A model generated the notes under the pieces. It was not told the DNA's origin and ran no database searches. It saw only the letters and a list, made by a program, of their open reading frames with translations. Shown piece by piece: positions 1,877 through 53,215 of a stretch of DNA of 53,215 bases (position 1 is the stretch's first letter; each line of letters starts with the position of its first letter). Made by a program: the position numbers and the translations under genes. Source of the stretch: Intoshia linei (lineage: Eukaryota; Animalia; Orthonectida); contig LWCA01000110.1 of assembly GCA_001642005.1 (NCBI GenBank), positions 1 through 53,215 of the forward strand, read 5' to 3'.

Positions 1877-4800
1877 TCAGTACTCACTTTCATTTTTTAT
1901 TTTTTGTTTGTTGGCCAGGTCTTTCAAGGTGGTTTCATGTTCTTGCATGTCGCTTTTAATTATTCCTATACTACCTTCATAGTTTTGTTTTGTCCATTTT
2001 AAAAATTTGCCAAGTTTTTTCTTTTTCAAATCTTTTTCAAGGTGAGCAATGTTTTTTGTTTTGAATAGACAGACGGCGGAAGTGGAAAAATTCATTTCCA
2101 TGTTATTTTCAGTTGATGAGTCATTATTGGTGGTAGACATGCATGGATCTGTCGATAATCGAGGTGGTAATCTGTTGGATTCACTGCTGATTGAATTATC
2201 ACTGACTCCATTTAAAACACTTGTTGCTCTAATGGGTTTATAATCTAGAGTAAATTTAAATTATATCATTTTTCATATTACTAGGTTCACTTCTTTCAAT
2301 AATTTCTTTGGTTGAGGTTTGTGGAATTTCTAAGTATTCTGATTTTATAGTTTCGTCTAATTTTTTTAATGTATATATAGATTTTTTTAATTAATCAATA
2401 CCGTTGATGAATAGTTTAAAGTCGGATAATATTGATAGAACTTCTAAAATATTAATTGTAAGTAAATAAAAAATTTATCGCATAAATAAGATTTTACAAT
2501 ATGGTGACTGGTTAAATTAAGGTTTGTGGAAAAATTTAAATTTTTCTTTAAATGGTAAGTTTGTTGACAACTGTTATGAATATAGTCAAAATATGTCGTT
2601 TAGAATATCAAAATTATTCTATTTGCACTTTTTTAATAGCAATATGGCATATACAGTAATATAGGTAATGAGCGCCGTTTAATCTGTTGTAGAATAATGT
2701 GAATATTTTTGATTTTGGTTCAAAAAAAGCACCGTATTTGTCTTATTTATGTTCATATTTTTCAATTCTGTTTTTACTATGAAAAAGTTGGGAAATTAGA
2801 AAAATAAAAATAATAGTGTTCGATACAAACAAGAAATTTCAAAATTCATTGAAATTAAAAAAACAAAAAATAAAAATATGCAAAAAAATTAACACAAAAT
2901 CGATTGGATTTTATACAAATCTAATAAAATTAATACTGCACTGTTTATACTTAACTAGCTTGACTTTTATGTACTACGTACAAACAGCACCTAACTCTGC
3001 CGAGGGTACATTTTTATAAAAAAATAATAAAAAAATAAATTCATGTTAAAAATCTAACTTAAAAATCCCACTATTCACTATTATCAATCCTTTAAAGGAG
3101 TGGTTCCCAAATTTGTTTCAGGTGGAACCATCATATCACATTACTTTTTACTTTAAAATCAATTATTCCATCTTAATTTTTTGTTTGTTAACATTTGCGT
3201 AATGAATTTTAAAAATTGTTATCCCATTTTTTTAATTTATTAGACAGAATGTGTGTATAATATTTAAAAATAAAGTAAAAACAGTCCAATCCTAAAAATT
3301 GTCATAAATAGCATAAATTCCAAAAAAATAAAATTAGTCCAATACTAAAAATTGTCATAAAGGTGTGAGTTTTGGAAATTGAAATTTATATTATTATATG
3401 TAAAAATTGTCATAAATTGCATTCTAAGACTGGTAGTTATTGAAATAAACGGTAACACACAAACAAAAATAGCGTAGCATATTATATAAGTTAAGATAAA
3501 TTACCACTATCTATAGTAGAAGAATCATTCATCACATCAATATATTTCATTTGTTCTTTTGGAGATACATCTTCTTCCGGTGGCATGGTATGGAATTTTC
3601 CATAATCTACGCCCCTGACTTTGGATTTTTGTGTTTTTTGGTCTTTGCATTGTATATAATCACCAACGTTGGTTGTTATAAATGAGCGTCGCAAAGTACT
3701 AAAATTTTTTTAAGATACCACACACATGCGTAATATAATAAAATACAAACCGACAACGTTTTAGATCAGGATGTCAATTATGCGACCTTCAATTGTGGAA
3801 TGTGCGCGTTATAATATAAATTTTTATTTTTATAAAAATTTTATACGTATATTTCTTTTTTTACAGTTTTTTCATAATTACAATTTTAACATAACATTTT
3901 GAGTAAAGATTATTTTGTGCGGCCTGCGTAATAACTTTTTTTCACATTTGGCCCGCCAATCAAATTGAGCCTGACACCCCTGTTTTAGACGACCATTCTC
4001 AATGAAGTCCACATCAATTTTTTTTAGATCCATCAAAAATTTTATAGTTACATTATTTACAGAAATAAAAAAATGATATTTCAGCAATAATAGCAATTTT
4101 TTATAATTAACGCAATTTAATATCTATTTTCCATAATACCACATTTTAATCACATCTTAGATACTCAATATAAAAGTAAAAACAATAATACCCATTTTCT
4201 CCCAATGCATTGAATGTGATTATATGTTCACATATAAAGGAAATATTTAAAGGTGAATAACGTTGATATTACGCAATTTAAATAATAACGTATAAAATGT
4301 TTAGAATCGTGTAGGCTTTCAATGTATTTTTCATGGTTATGAGATTTTTAATTTAGTCTCTTACCGTCTACAGCAGAGATGTAAGACTCAATTTGCTTGG
4401 CGGGCCAAATGTGAAAACAAGTTATTACGCGGGCCGCACATAAAAATCTTTACTTAAAAAATTATGTTAAAACTAACAAATTTAATTAATTTATAATAAT
4501 TTTAATTCATAAAATGAAATATGAAAAAACGAAAATGGAATAAATGTAAAAATTGTAATAATGAATAAATAAATCATGAAAAATATATGAAAAAACTGTA
4601 AAATAAGAATTATATGTATTAAAATTGTTATAAAAAATACAAATTTATATTATAACGCGGGCCGTACGTTCCATAATTGGGGAGCAAATGGCCCGTGGGC
4701 CGCATAATTGACACCCATAATCTCACCAATAAAATGTGTAAAAATGTACGACCGGTTCAATGTTTTTATGAATCTATAATATTAAAAGTGTTACCCTGGC

Positions 4801-6160
4801 CAAGTAATTATGCGGATATGAATCCAATCGAAAACGTTTGGAAAATATTGAAAGATGAAGTGCATGAAGTAAAAAATTCTTCAAAAAAAATTGATATTGA
4901 ATTGATACTTGTATCAATTCATCATTAACCTATCTTTGAAAACCATTTTTTTAAACTTTAATATAAGGTACTACATTTTATGGGTCCAGAGCTAAAAAAT
5001 CGAGAAACGATGACATATACAAGAATGTCTCTACTGGACTATGACCCGGTCCGTGAAATACCAGTACTCAATGAGTACTACTCATGTGACTCTATGATAG
5101 AGTAATAAATAATTTAACTCCAAAACGAAAATAACCCATTTCAAAAAATACTTTAAGCATACCCATTACGCTTTTTTGACTTAAGAACACCTCACTTTTA
5201 GAAAACCTTACAAACCTCAAAGAAATCTACAATTAACCATTTCAAATAATTATATTTAAAAGGGATAGCATCTATTATACTATAATGAAAAAATCATACA
5301 ACAATATTGTATTATGCATATCTTGAGCGGTGTTACAAGAATCAGTCTTCATGCATATTTCACCACTACCCATAGTAGAAGCATTTCCGGTTGTAACAAG
5401 AAAATAGCATTCAAAATGACCAAGTTTTCGAACATTTGATAGCTAATTTGATAATAGATTTTTTAAAGAATGATAAATCCAATTACCTCTAAAATAATAC
5501 TTGGAGATTTAGATTGAAATGTTGCCATGAAAATAATATTTGCTGCAGTGAGTCCTAGCCGATAATCTCCATGTTCAACAGTGCTTTTTTTATCATTTTT
5601 AATTAATTTTAACATGATTGGTGCAGGTAAGGTGACCGTTTTCATTTTTTTGTATTCGCCAGTAGATATAATTTTATTGACGACTTCCACCTGCCACATG
5701 TTGATAAATGTTGAACTGAGGAGTATTTTTTCGCCTTTACATTGTAAACGAACTTTTCGTAACAAATGAAGCCATTTTTCAGCTTCATTGTTATCAGCAC
5801 ATATAAACTAAGAATATTAAATTATAAAAATAAAAAAAAAAATTACCGCCATAATATTTTGACTTATTGTAAAAATCGCTATAGTGTGTACGTGACCGAC
5901 TAATGTGTCAATGGATATACACTCATCAATAAGATTAAGAGTATGGCTAGGTTTTCGTTTATTCATAAAAAGTTTTTCATTTTTATAACAAGATAACTCT
6001 GCAATTTTTTCGTAAGCAGTTTCTTTTATTGTTAAAGCATAGAAGCGCCTTTTTTTTGTCTATTTTAAATAAATTAAAAAAATTTATATTATGAGAATAA
6101 ATAATAATATACCTTCAATTTTTTTAGCCATCCAGTGATGACGACGTCTTCGACAGTCAT
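1877..6160 (-). CDS. Insulin receptor substrate (IRS/chico)-like adaptor: PH domain, IRS-type PTB domain and a short tail; multi-exon
   Basis: ATG at 6160: MTVEDVVITGWLKKLK|TKKRRFYAL...NEAEKWLHLL (IRS-type PH). Then FINMWQVEVVNK...GDYRLGLT...ILE|LSNVRKLGHFECYFLVTTGNASTMGSGEICMKTDSCNTAQDMHNNI, which matches the IRS PTB pattern. Downstream exons near 3505-3699, 2402-2443, 2282-2356 and 1877-2243 join in phase with each other. The junction from the PTB exon to the 3699 exon is not resolved. Confidence 0.8.
2955..3496 (-). mobile_element. Non-autonomous Helitron (short or internally rearranged copy) in an IRS intron
   Basis: The minus strand starts A^TCTTAACTTATATAATATGC...GTTTGTGTG and ends with the hairpin GCTGTTTGTAC-GTA-GTACATAAAAG followed by CTAG^T. 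Both ends match the copy at 49485-50602. Confidence 0.75.
3767..3982 (-). mobile_element. hAT-type MITE, family A
   Basis: Termini CAGGATGTCA / TGACACCCCTG; 8-bp TSD TTTTAGAT (3759-3766) / TTTTAGAC (3983-3990); homologous to 4374-4719 and 43786-44008. Confidence 0.85.
4374..4719 (+). mobile_element. hAT-type MITE, family A, inverted relative to 3767-3982
   Basis: Shares GACTCAATTTGCTTGGCGGGCCAAATGTGAAAA...CGCGGGCCGCACA and the 3' end GCATAATTGACACCC. The termini are degenerate and there is no clean TSD. Confidence 0.75.
4780..4875 (+). pseudogene. Tc1/mariner DDE transposase fragment
   Basis: KVLPWPSNYADMNPIENVWKILKDEV matches the Tc1 motif WPxxSPDLNPIENxW. Confidence 0.8.
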
Positions 6161-47900: not shown

Positions 47901-50900
47901 TTGGCGCAATGTATAATTTTTGATAAACAGGTAATATTATTATCGTTATCAATATTTTTAGAGTTTTGATATACTTTTGTATTTACTTTTTCAAGGTTTG
48001 CGTTTTATTATTTAGAATTATGGAAAATTATGAAATTTTCAAACTTTTCAATAGTGTTAATAATATTATTTTACACTATAATATCATTTTATTATTGCAT
48101 TTTAATTATTTTGACAAAATTTAGAGGATTACAGATTGGATACATTTCTATTAGAAAAAACAAATTATCTCGATACAAAACTTTGTTTTTAAATTTATCT
48201 CAAGACATTGACCGAGAAAATTTAAAACATTATTTTCGATATTTTTTTCGGCTTTGTCTAAATTATGATTGTGTACAAAAATTAATAAAAAGGGAATTAA
48301 CTCTGAAGAATTACGCTTTTCATAAGAAAATTTTATTTTCTATTCAAAATTTACAGGTATTTTTTTATATTTTTATTATTTGTATGCACAAAAATATTAT
48401 TATAACAGATTTTGGTGGCCCTGGAAGGTTTAAATCAGTGTTTCCTAACCAATTGTGTATCATCGCTTATAAAAACTATTGCTCTATAATCTATGATCTA
48501 CAATCTGTAGAGTCTACACCTTTTTCGATTCAAATTTGACATGATATGACATTGAATTTTTTTAATTTGAACTTCAATATTTAATTAAGTTCAAATATCT
48601 ATAATTAATTTTAGAAGACAATTGGAAAAATTAATATTGGTATTCCTTATTGGAATTATTTGGATTTCAACGACGCTGTTATATTTTTAATTATTGATAA
48701 AGACCCAATGATTGTAGATAAACTATCTAATCAATATTTTCGAAATAGCCACCTTTTTTTACAGGCTAGCATTTTACAATCAATTAAGGTTTTTTTTGAT
48801 ACATTTTAATTTATAATTTTGTATATATAAAATATAATATGACATGTAAGATACATGCCCTACAACAGTGATGGGAAAATCTGGGTTTGTGAGTCAAAAA
48901 TGACGTCGCATTTTTTTAATACTTGAATTTGTCTAGAAAAAAACTATTAAACAAATAGATTCGATGAGTAAATAAGGTTAACTTTCGTAGCTTATTTATA
49001 ATACCTTAATAATAATTTAAACATATATTAGGGTGTCTACTTTTTTTATTAAAAAAACGCATTTTTGTATTTATCTACTAAAAAACGAAATCGGTTAATA
49101 TTTACCCCATCAAATGTAATTATTGAAATTCATACAAAATTTTTAAGATAAATGTAAGATATAAATTATTATATATATATTATATAATCAGCTTTAATTT
49201 GTTTATATGGATATATATTATATTATATGGATTTATATGGACCTTTGATATGTTTACCATGCTGTGTGGACCACTTTATTTTTTAAATTCATTTCTAGCT
49301 AATTTATTTTGGTTTTTAATAATGTTTAAATTTCTCATAATTAACCCAAAAAACTACACATCAAATTTATTATAATATACAAATTAATTAAGTAATTGTA
49401 AACTCAAAATAAATTTCGTAAAAACCAAAATAAATGAGCTAGAATTTAATTTAAAAAAACAACTTTGAACAATAAATTTATGAATCCTTACATATATAAT
49501 ATTCTACGCAATATTTGTTTGTGTGTGTGTGTGTTCCACTTTATGTCAATAACTACCAGTCTTAGAATTTTATAAAGTCCACATTTCAATTACATTTTTT
49601 TTAGGGGATAAGATAAGATAAATTTCAACCTCCCAAACTCACACCTTACGGGTCAAAAACCCCTATTGTCATTTTTTTGAAAATCAAACAATTGGAGAAT
49701 TTAAAAAAAATATATACGGTGATACGAATTTTAAAATCATAAATATTATCATCAATTTAAATTTAAAAAAAAAATATCTTTAGAGCCAAACCCACAAATG
49801 ACCCTTTTTTTTAATTAAAACAACTTTAGAATTTAAAAAATGTACAGTTAGTGTACGGTTAGGTGGTACAGTTGTATCTTGTTAACACACACGAAAAATT
49901 TTAATCTGAATAAGTGACGCCTTCACGGTTAAATAAACTATTTTAGTATTTATATATATTTTTTCCAAAATATTTTATTAAAACCAAAAATGTCAAATAA
50001 TTAATAGTCTGAAAATTAAAAAAAAAAATTATTCTGATAGAGCTTATTCCAGTTAATGTAAATACAAATACGATATTATCAGCAAATATTTTTTCAAAAG
50101 TTTGAATTAAAATTAAAAATATTCATCTTACAAATTTTAAAAAAAATGTTCATTTAACGTATACACATTTCTAATAAAGAAATATGGGTGAAAATCTATA
50201 TAATTTATTCCTTTGGAATTTTTTTCATTGCTACGCAATTTTTAAATTATCATTTTCAAAACATTTTGTTTAAAATTTAAATTAAAACTACAACGACGAT
50301 CACTAAAATTAATACAACTTTGTTATTATCATTTTTATATTTATTACAATCATTTGCAATATTGGTAAAATTCGGCTGAATGTTTATAAAACCTGCAACA
50401 AATTTGGGAACCACTCCTTTATAGGATTGATAATAGTGAATAGTAGGATTTTTAAGTTAGATTTTCAACGTGAATTGGGATTGATAATAGTGAATAGTAG
50501 AATTTTTAAGTTAGATTTTCAACGTGAATTTTTTGTGCAATAAAAATGTGTCATCAGCAGAGCTAGGTGCTGTTTGTACGTAGTAAATTACAGTCAACCT
50601 AGTGTTATATAATATATGTGTATGAAACATTAAATTTAGTGCATTTCGTATCAACATTTTAATATGCAATTACTTTCGGATGGATTATATGCCATGTACC
50701 TCAATTCGAGTTTTACTATAGATGGAACATATAATATTATGATTAACCCTCTCGAACCTCACCATTTACCAAACGTAAGTTTTAATATATGAATAACAAT
50801 TTAAAAAGACACGGGTTTTCCACAGATAATGATTTCCTCATGAATTCAAATTTGTTTGTCTGGATCAAATCATATTTGAATCCACATCGACATTGATTAC

Positions 50901-51647: not shown

Positions 51648-52797
51648 TTAAGCAGTTTTATACTTTTTTAAATTACCCTAAAAATTGACTTAAATCATCA
51701 AAATAAAATAAAAAACCATATAATGTCGTTTTTCAATCGAGGTTTGGAATCTACCGTGTCCGAATTTACTGCTTGTATCGATAAATTTCAAATTGACTTT
51801 TTCGAGTGCAGATGGAGTGACTGGGGGATTCAATGACTAAAAAATATGTTAAAAAATATCAAATTATAATGAAACTTTTCTCAAAGTTAAAACGCGTTTT
51901 CTACAACCCATTGTACATCCTTTCAGTAAAATGAAATCGTTTTTAACAACACCATAGTGTGGAAACCCACCCATCGGCGTTATTGATTTTTCAGTCAAAT
52001 CAAATTCTGTGGATGCATTGTTTGTATCAATTTTTCCATCAACGACTTTATATCCCTAAACATTAATGTGTTTTTGATTAAAAGAATAACCTGTCCGATT
52101 TTATAAATTTTTTTGTTTATTTCAGTTCTATGGTGGTATCCTTTTTGACCAGCTCTAGCAACAGAAAAAGCTACCCTAGATGGATGCCACGCACCAATAC
52201 AAGCCACCTTACGTAAACCTTTGTGAGTTTTTCTTGGCAACTTTGTGACGTGCCATCTGGAAACAACACCTTTAAATCCGTGGCCTTTTGTAACTCCGCA
52301 TAAATCAACCATTTCATTTTGTTGAAAAACTTGACCAACGTTCACATTGCGTTCCATCATTTTTCTAGCCCATTTTACCTTGTCAACAATTGTTCCTCCG
52401 TTTAATTGTACTTCCATTATGTTGTCCTTCTTTTGACGCAAACCAATCAATTTCATCTATAAATAAAATATACATTTAAATGGAGTGTTACCTGAGAGTG
52501 TGCAAGTACACGTATAACTGAACAGTATTTACTCAATTTATCATAATTATGTTCAACGTCGGATAAACCTTCAGGTGACTGATATTTTTTGGAATATTTA
52601 GAGTAAGATTTTTTCTTTGATTTCAACCAATTGCTATAAAATCTTCTCCTGCAACCATCACTTAAATGTTCAGCCATAATGGTTTTCATTGATTTTAAAC
52701 CATTTGGTGTTTCATAATAGCCAACTATACCAACAATTACCATTGGTGGAGTTTCTATTACTGTTACTGCTTCAACTGTTTCTTTTTTGTTCAATTC
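51648..52797 (-). CDS. RPL3: 60S ribosomal protein L3 (uL3), 3' exons; the 5' exons lie right of the window
   Basis: [16 protein letters not shown]...EVQLNGG...[13 protein letters not shown]...[20 protein letters not shown]...MGGFPHYG...[16 protein letters not shown]. Confidence 0.98.
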
Positions 52798-52966
52798 TAA
52801 ACGAATAATTAAGTATTGAATCCATTTAGAAAACAAAATGTTCATTTTCTATTAATCAGATTGGTTTTATTATCGTTCCATGTGCGACTCACCGTAGATA
52901 ATTAAATAAATAATTTTTAATAAAACTCAAACAGTCATTTCAATAAAAAATGTTCATTATTTACAA

Positions 52967-53017
52967 TAAAACGAAAGGTTCATGATTTTCAGAAACACGG
53001 ACCTTTAGTGTCATCAG
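52967..53017 (-). ncRNA. U18/SNORD18-like box C/D snoRNA copy with canonical guide spacing and a degenerate box D
   Basis: Minus strand cTGATGA-cactaaa-GGTCCGTGTTT-CTGA-aa-ATCATGA-acctttcgt-TTTA. The guide is antisense to conserved LSU rRNA GAAACACGGACC. Confidence 0.7.
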
Positions 53018-53062
53018 ATGCAAATAGGTATTAAAATTAAACAGAAATGTAAAAGAAAACAT

Positions 53063-53114
53063 TCAGATTAAAAAGTTCATTTTTAGACGAAACACAAATT
53101 TTAAATATCATATC
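53063..53114 (-). pseudogene. Decayed copy of the U18-like snoRNA
   Basis: gATATGA-tatttaaa-ATTTGTGTTTCGT-CTAA-aa-ATGA-actttttaat-CTGA; the guide and boxes C, D' and C' are mutated. Confidence 0.65.
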
Positions 53115-53150
53115 TAAGAAATTAATATCGAAAACTAAATTTCCTTACAA

Positions 53151-53204
53151 TCAGACGAAAAGTTCATCATTTTCAGACGAAACACGGACCTTAAATATCA
53201 TCAT
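53151..53204 (-). ncRNA. U18/SNORD18-like box C/D snoRNA with all four boxes perfect, in an RPL3 intron, sense to the host gene
   Basis: ATGATGA (C) tatttaa GGTCCGTGTTTC gt CTGA (D') aa ATGATGA (C') acttttcgt CTGA (D); 12-nt perfect complement to LSU rRNA GAAACACGGACC. Confidence 0.85.
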
Positions 53205-53215
53205 AACTAAAAACT

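Follow-up and report, generated by a model that had tools for sequence, protein, structure and literature searches.

A tandem array of U18-type box C/D snoRNA units in intron 2 of the RPL3 gene of Intoshia linei

Intron 2 of RPL3 in the orthonectid Intoshia linei contains a tandem array of at least eight full snoRNA-shaped units, each about 90 nt long and all on the sense strand of the host gene. We consider it highly probable that this array is the only U18/SNORD18-type guide locus of the genome, that its copies are mostly decaying, and that an intact unit acts as a methylation guide. The window analyzed here, a stretch of 53,215 nucleotides, is contig C1546 (G000:C1546) in full, and its right end stops inside the array.

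Host gene and layout of the array

RPL3 lies on the minus strand of the window. Exons 1 and 2 are missing from the window and both were found at the end of a second contig, C2396 (fetched as L006), where exon 2 (L006:4274-4466) begins SHRKFSKPRHGSL and is followed at L006:4467 by the GTAATT donor of intron 2. A genome search for RPL3, run per exon and by reference, located one copy each of exons 2 and 3 in the 41.6 Mb assembly. The joined reading frame of exon 2, which ends at L006:4466, and exon 3, which starts at window position 52796, was translated. Because these two exons are single-copy and lie one on each contig, the ends of C2396 and C1546 face each other across intron 2. The end of C2396 is likewise inside the repeat, and the assembly break splits the array. 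For annotation, this means that the two contigs, each with a part of the split RPL3 gene, should be joined at these ends. The automatic annotation of RPL3 in the assembly is likely to be truncated because of this split. Exon 1 apparently consists of the ATG alone, followed by an intron of about 71 nt and exon 2 (L006:4141-4466, G000:C2396). The host gene and its introns are laid out as follows.

L006:4467-5069 (G000:C2396): 5' part of RPL3 intron 2, with donor GTAATT
52797..53215, minus strand: window part of RPL3 intron 2, reaching the contig end and ending in the exon 3 acceptor
52797..52966, minus strand: 3' tail of intron 2, with faint remains of one more half unit, ending in acceptor TTTAG
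52492..52796, minus strand: RPL3 exon 3 (host gene), identified by translation; single copy in the genome
52457..52491, minus strand: RPL3 intron 3, 35 nt, the size reference for the spacers
52056..52090, minus strand: RPL3 intron 4, 35 nt

Intron 5 of RPL3 is 39 nt long. The GC content of the window is 27% and introns are about 35-70 nt, which fits the intron sizes quoted for I. linei (PMC6543705). Beyond the 3' end of RPL3, a non-coding unit of 54 nt occurs twice with 98% identity at window positions 50424-50530.

The donor of exon 2 (L006:4467) and the acceptor of exon 3 (window 52797) bracket units A to I of the array. C2396 carries units A to E plus the beginning of a sixth, F, and the window carries G, H, and I. 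The preliminary description of the window had placed three units in one intron on the RPL3 sense (minus) strand, with G intact, H decayed, and I having an intact guide and a broken box D. Our minus-strand reading agrees with these positions and with each state of preservation. The suggestion that the array extends past the right edge was also borne out, since it continues on C2396 with five more units. The full units are listed below.

Unit A, on C2396: type 1; box C CCATGA, box D' CTAA
Unit B, on C2396: type 2; box C TGATAA; an internal deletion fuses two TTTCGT stretches
Unit C, on C2396: type 3, decayed; 94% identity to H
Unit D, L006:4881-4931: type 1, four boxes intact; box C 4881-4887, box D 4928-4931
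Unit E, on C2396: type 2; box C TGATAA
Unit G, 53151..53204, minus strand: type 2, all four boxes intact; box C 53204-53198, guide 53197-53177, box D' 53176-53173, box C' 53169-53164, box D 53154-53151
CGT in unit G, 53177..53179, minus strand: between the guide core and box D'
Unit H, 53063..53113, minus strand: type 3, decayed; box C TGATAT, box D' CTAA, box C' shortened, box D CTGA
Unit I, 52967..53017, minus strand: type 1; box C 53017-53011, guide 53010-52993, box D' 52992-52989 intact

Unit G contains, in order, box C (ATGATGA), a 21-nt spacer with GGTCCGTGTTT, box D' (CTGA), box C' (TGATGA), a 9-nt spacer, and box D (CTGA). In unit H the frame is kept, but mutations have altered the guide core and left boxes C, D', and C' degenerate. 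Unit I retains box C (CTGATGA) and box D' (CTGA); its C' reads ATCATGA, and box D has been lost, with TTTA at 52970-52967. Across the array, boxes C and D are both intact in G and D, and one or both are damaged in A, B, C, E, H, and I, so that six of the eight full units have damage to at least one box. D' CTGA together with C' TGATGA is found in D, E, and G, and unit I has this D' alone. The terminal stem of unit D is 6-8 bp. The array has the form of an intronic cluster, with two or more candidate snoRNA genes in one intron on the host sense strand.

Three types of unit can be distinguished: A, D, and I make up type 1, B, E, and G type 2, and C and H type 3. Identity is 83-99% among units of one type and 53-85% between types. 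The types follow one another in the order 1-2-3-1-2-3 ... 2-3-1, forming a higher-order repeat of about 270 nt, and in the window G, H, and I are spaced 87-98 nt apart. Tandem Repeats Finder missed the array because the three units in the window are only 53-71% alike. Unit E resembles a chimera, with a 5' half of type 2 and a 3' half of type 1. The trinucleotide CGT before box D' is present in B, C, G, and H and absent from A, D, E, and I. Its occurrence in both type 2 and type 3, which are about 60% alike, indicates that it is older than the last amplification. There are weak traces of further half units on the flanks of the array; local alignment of the 3' tail with unit D gave p of about 0.045 against shuffles, and the tail had no Rfam match up to an E value of 10.

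A simple overlap of the two contig ends was considered and rejected: the window matches the terminal 75 nt of C2396 with two mismatches, yet about five positions, the 3-nt CGT indel among them, distinguish unit E from unit G. E and G are thus either distinct copies, in which case the repeat order gives at least 10 units, or alleles, in which case there are 7. The differences between these near-identical units lie in the boxes and guide flanks and not in the spacer, a pattern that gives no sign of purifying selection on the copies. No third contig bearing the repeat was found in the 41.6 Mb assembly.

The stretches between units have a regular length. After type-1 and type-2 units there are five spacers, each exactly 35 nt in length, and they share this length and their ends with RPL3 introns 3 and 4.

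53114..53148, minus strand: 35-nt spacer, starting GTAAGG and ending TTAG
L006:4678-4712, 4749-4783, 4934-4968, and 5024-5058: the other 35-nt spacers, GTAAGG...TTAG

This resemblance to introns is partly explained by the terminal stem, because CTTA and TAAG also form its two halves. An ORF-joining screen of the window showed a mild excess of candidates of 34-37 nt.

U18 identity and rRNA target

SNORD18 was the best Rfam family for six units, as expected if these are U18-type box C/D copies as the preliminary description proposed (I, 29.4 bits; E, 28.9; D, 28.1; G, 25.7; A, 21.7; B, 18.4). The value for unit I is the top SNORD18 score in the genome. E values for SNORD18 were 0.011 and 0.088 for units G and I when 3.2 kb was searched, and went down to 0.0045 on about 1 kb and to 0.03 on the whole genome. 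The Rfam check that had been proposed therefore supported the family assignment and fell short on the score, since no unit reaches the 41 bits of the SNORD18 gathering score, which counts against a U18 explanation; at the gathering threshold the whole window had no Rfam match. The shortfall comes mainly from a shorter 3' half. The guide and D' of the SNORD18 consensus, UGGUCCGUGUUUCUGA, are identical to the guide here. The array is best described as a putative U18-type functional homologue and not as a SNORD18 member at the curated threshold.

We searched the 41.6 Mb assembly for the guide 12-mer GGTCCGTGTTTC and found eight occurrences, six of them in this intron, one in rDNA antisense, and one on contig C430; the reversed control 12-mer occurred once in the genome. 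The C430 copy has no boxes and was attributed to chance. The same applies to a 25-bit SNORD18 match on C1376, which is an 8-mer without boxes in an aspartic-protease intron, and to guide matches with one mismatch elsewhere, where the mismatch always falls in the guide or D'. RPL4 was examined as a possible host, and neither its cytosolic locus (C1234) nor a mitochondrial-type L4 (C1085) had a snoRNA-like Rfam match. An ordinary satellite recurring through the genome is excluded, since only contigs C1546 and C2396 match the unit. By these searches, RPL3 intron 2 is the sole predicted U18-type locus in the 41.6 Mb assembly.

The target that the preliminary description required of the organism's own LSU rRNA is present: the LSU rRNA on contig C1 contains CCCGTCTTGAAACACGGACCAAGG. 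The guides pair with LSU AAACACGGACC of the same genome through 11-12 Watson-Crick pairs (C1:1822-1833). Unit D forms 11 Watson-Crick pairs from D' onward and places the fifth nucleotide opposite C1:1827. This is the A of AAACACGG, the U18 site, which corresponds to human 28S Am1313, yeast Am647, and Arabidopsis Am660 (PMC3511168); the yeast equivalent is also numbered A647/649. Unit G forms 12 Watson-Crick pairs and one G-U pair with C1:1821-1833. Its duplex begins at position 2-3 from D', as usual, and has C1:1824 at the fifth position. The CGT thus moves the fifth-nucleotide prediction by 3 nt, from C1:1827 to C1:1824. The fifth-nucleotide rule gives C1:1827 for the type-1 units and for E, and G, B, C, and H point 3 nt upstream. 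In human, the neighboring site Am1310 (old numbering) is assigned to SNORD126 (PMC9941101). The Rfam consensus of SNORD126 (RF01168) and the array share the guide core, and SNORD126 is the third-best Rfam match for unit G at 19.8 bits against a threshold of 55, a weak score that does not imply homology.

There was no credible target for a second guide before box D, where the spacer is 9 nt and the best duplexes have at most 9 pairs with several G-U pairs. A search for new rRNA targets of the mutated type-3 guides (C and H) gave nothing convincing. We also noted that CACATGGAAC at window positions 52875-52884 (minus strand), in the 3' tail of the intron, complements LSU GTTCCATGTG (C1:2681-2690), the region targeted by yeast U24. 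A U24-like snoRNA in this tail was rejected: the complement is 10 nt long, but neither a D nor a D' box is suitably spaced from it, Rfam gave no match, and it is probably due to chance. Just upstream of CACATGGAAC there is a donor-like motif, GGTGAGT. The assembly has the rDNA proper in pieces on small contigs (C1 and C3331). A degenerate LSU copy around the U18 target, TTAAAACACGGACAAAAG, lies inside a larger contig (L016, G000:C368:15502-19513, at about 1480-1560) and is probably an rDNA-derived pseudogene.

Predicted function and competing explanations

Expression, snoRNP assembly, and methylation, as we infer them from the sequence, would proceed as follows. The array would be co-transcribed with RPL3 and would exit the pre-mRNA in the spliced intron. 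A unit with intact C, D', C', and D would bind the box C/D core proteins, and trimming would leave an RNA of about 55 nt. The guide upstream of D' in this RNA would pair with LSU, and fibrillarin would methylate the adenosine that corresponds to human 28S A1313 and yeast A647/649. This 2'-O-methylation would most likely be guided by unit D, which is predicted to have the canonical register and a terminal stem. Unit G appears intact as well, with its register shifted, and the remaining units would be duplicates at various stages of decay that may have arisen via unequal crossing-over and gene conversion. Polycistronic snoRNAs of plants and yeast are released by endonuclease. Should G assemble as well, the D-to-G stretch would be protected, and either an endonuclease would be needed or an RNA with snoRNA ends would persist. 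If D alone assembles, ordinary trimming would suffice. The need for endonucleolytic processing put forward in the preliminary description would therefore lapse if only one unit assembles a snoRNP. Besides the Rfam scores, several points weigh against the proposed U18 guide. The predicted RNA would be unusually short, as boxes C to D span 51-54 nt, and its second spacer, of 9 nt, appears to have no target; E and G seem to differ without selective constraint; and unit I, which is nearest the 3' splice site, is broken.

How many units work is a separate matter. It is quite possible, though we rate it somewhat below an even chance, that D on C2396 is the sole functional unit, that the others are pseudogenes, and that exonucleolytic trimming of the debranched intron is enough with no special processing. 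Damage to most of the full units fits this explanation, as do the canonical register and best terminal stem of D and the animal rule of one snoRNA per intron (PMC2780460). Against it stands unit G, which is likewise intact in its four boxes and, by binding core proteins, would protect the D-to-G stretch. G is also the basis for supposing that there are two working guides in the intron, with type-1 units (D) directed to the U18 site and CGT units (G) to the adenosine 3 nt upstream, equivalent to human A1310. In such a subfunctionalized array the units would be separated after splicing or kept as RNA with snoRNA ends. The usual duplex start of G with C1:1824 at position 5, the presence of the CGT in four units of two types that puts its origin before the last amplification, and the weak match of G to SNORD126, the family to which human Am1310 is assigned (PMC9941101), all speak for two guides. 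We nevertheless find the idea doubtful, as three of the four CGT-bearing units are plainly dead and the SNORD126 score is far from its threshold. In addition, TTTCGTCTGA before D' in G repeats the stretch before G's own box D, and the CGT may be a neutral product of conversion. Unlikely, in our judgment, is the fuller proposal that two intact paralogues differing only by the 3-nt D' shift methylate adenosines 3 nt apart, both being released from one intron with the 35-nt spacers aiding their separation. If this were true, one intron would serve two sites that need two unlinked genes in human (SNORD18 and SNORD126).

Two further explanations would deny the array a guide function or give it another role. 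The whole array could be a dead relic or a local satellite in a reduced animal that has lost U18-guided methylation. The scores below the Rfam threshold, the decay of most copies, and the lack of visible constraint between copies are compatible with this, but two units combine four boxes with a perfect guide, the rRNA target is intact, the host gene is highly expressed and has the units on its sense strand, and U18 is conserved across yeast, plants, and human (PMC3511168). We regard a dead relic as very unlikely. The units could also be cryptic or poison exons and the 35-nt spacers real mini-introns, with alternative splicing leading to unproductive RPL3 transcripts or to a partitioned array. 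This idea comes from the five spacers of identical length with donor- and acceptor-like ends as in RPL3 introns 3 and 4, and from the mild excess of 34-37-nt candidates in the ORF-joining screen. It meets several difficulties: removal of the spacers would join the units and not free them, an included unit brings a TGA in frame, the CTTA and TAAG at the spacer ends are the two halves of the terminal stem, and the best unit, D, has no acceptor upstream. We found no coherent splicing scheme that frees the units, rejected the splicing model for the spacers, and give mini-introns very little credence.

We thus favor an array of mostly decaying U18-type copies in which an intact unit, most likely D, would serve as the guide. 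One intron here shows the birth and death of snoRNAs, with amplification of a three-unit block, a chimera, an internal deletion, decay of boxes, and a 3-nt register shift. The locus also places the sole predicted U18 guide of an animal with a very compact genome, in which the usual intron, at about 35-70 nt, could not accommodate a snoRNA. If both intact units are expressed, the intron would offer a natural test of how an animal resolves several snoRNAs from one intron and of how a new methylation site arises through a shift of box D'.

Comparison with known systems

The array resembles U18/SNORD18/snR18 (RF00093, clan CL00047) in its box C/D form, in a D' guide core GGUCCGUGUUU followed directly by CUGA, in the target adenosine of the LSU rRNA (human A1313), and in its position in an intron, on the sense strand, of a translation-related host. 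It differs in its host, in having many copies in one intron instead of one per intron, and in a predicted RNA about 15 nt shorter than the Rfam model that scores below the threshold. The U18 hosts named in the preliminary description hold, as chicken U18a, U18b, and U18c are in introns 2, 5, and 6 of RPL4 (PMC2653536) and yeast snR18 is in EFB1 (PMC9351541). RPL3 as host is thus different from both vertebrates and yeast. To call this a host switch, as had been done, is an overstatement if the term means more than that difference. Host and intron positions of ancient snoRNAs are generally unstable, and differences are the rule (PMC3511168). The relation of unit G to unit D is like that of SNORD126 to U18, the guide cores being near-identical and the target lying 3 nt to the 5' side of the U18 site. 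The SNORD126 gene is unlinked and has a different host, whereas the putative shifted guide here is a tandem paralogue with a 3-nt CGT.

Several snoRNAs per intron have been documented in rice and Drosophila (PMC2780460), and tandem intragenic duplication is a recognized route to snoRNA paralogues (PMC2653536). The intronic clusters of rice and Drosophila melanogaster likewise have several snoRNA genes on the same strand of one intron, often as locally duplicated isoforms. In contrast, the array described here consists of at least eight copies of one family, arranged with a higher-order period of three units, and is mostly decayed. Two snoRNAs that share an intron can also end up in a sno-lncRNA, as shown in mammals (PMC4234469). 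In sno-lncRNAs, such as those of the PWS region and of mouse Rpl13a with SNORD33/34, two snoRNAs shield the intervening stretch of intron, and this is a possible fate of the D-to-G stretch. Such RNAs are known from mammals only. SNORD115 and SNORD116 are also tandem box C/D units from local amplification, but there each unit has its own intron in a non-coding host with short exons between, whereas here all units are in one intron of a protein-coding gene.

Lineage-specific U18 hosts and introns with several snoRNAs are both already documented, and the locus is a real but fairly ordinary case of duplication and relocation. What appears particular to it is a single-family array with a higher-order period in a protein-coding intron, a putative register-shifted paralogue, and a very short predicted RNA.
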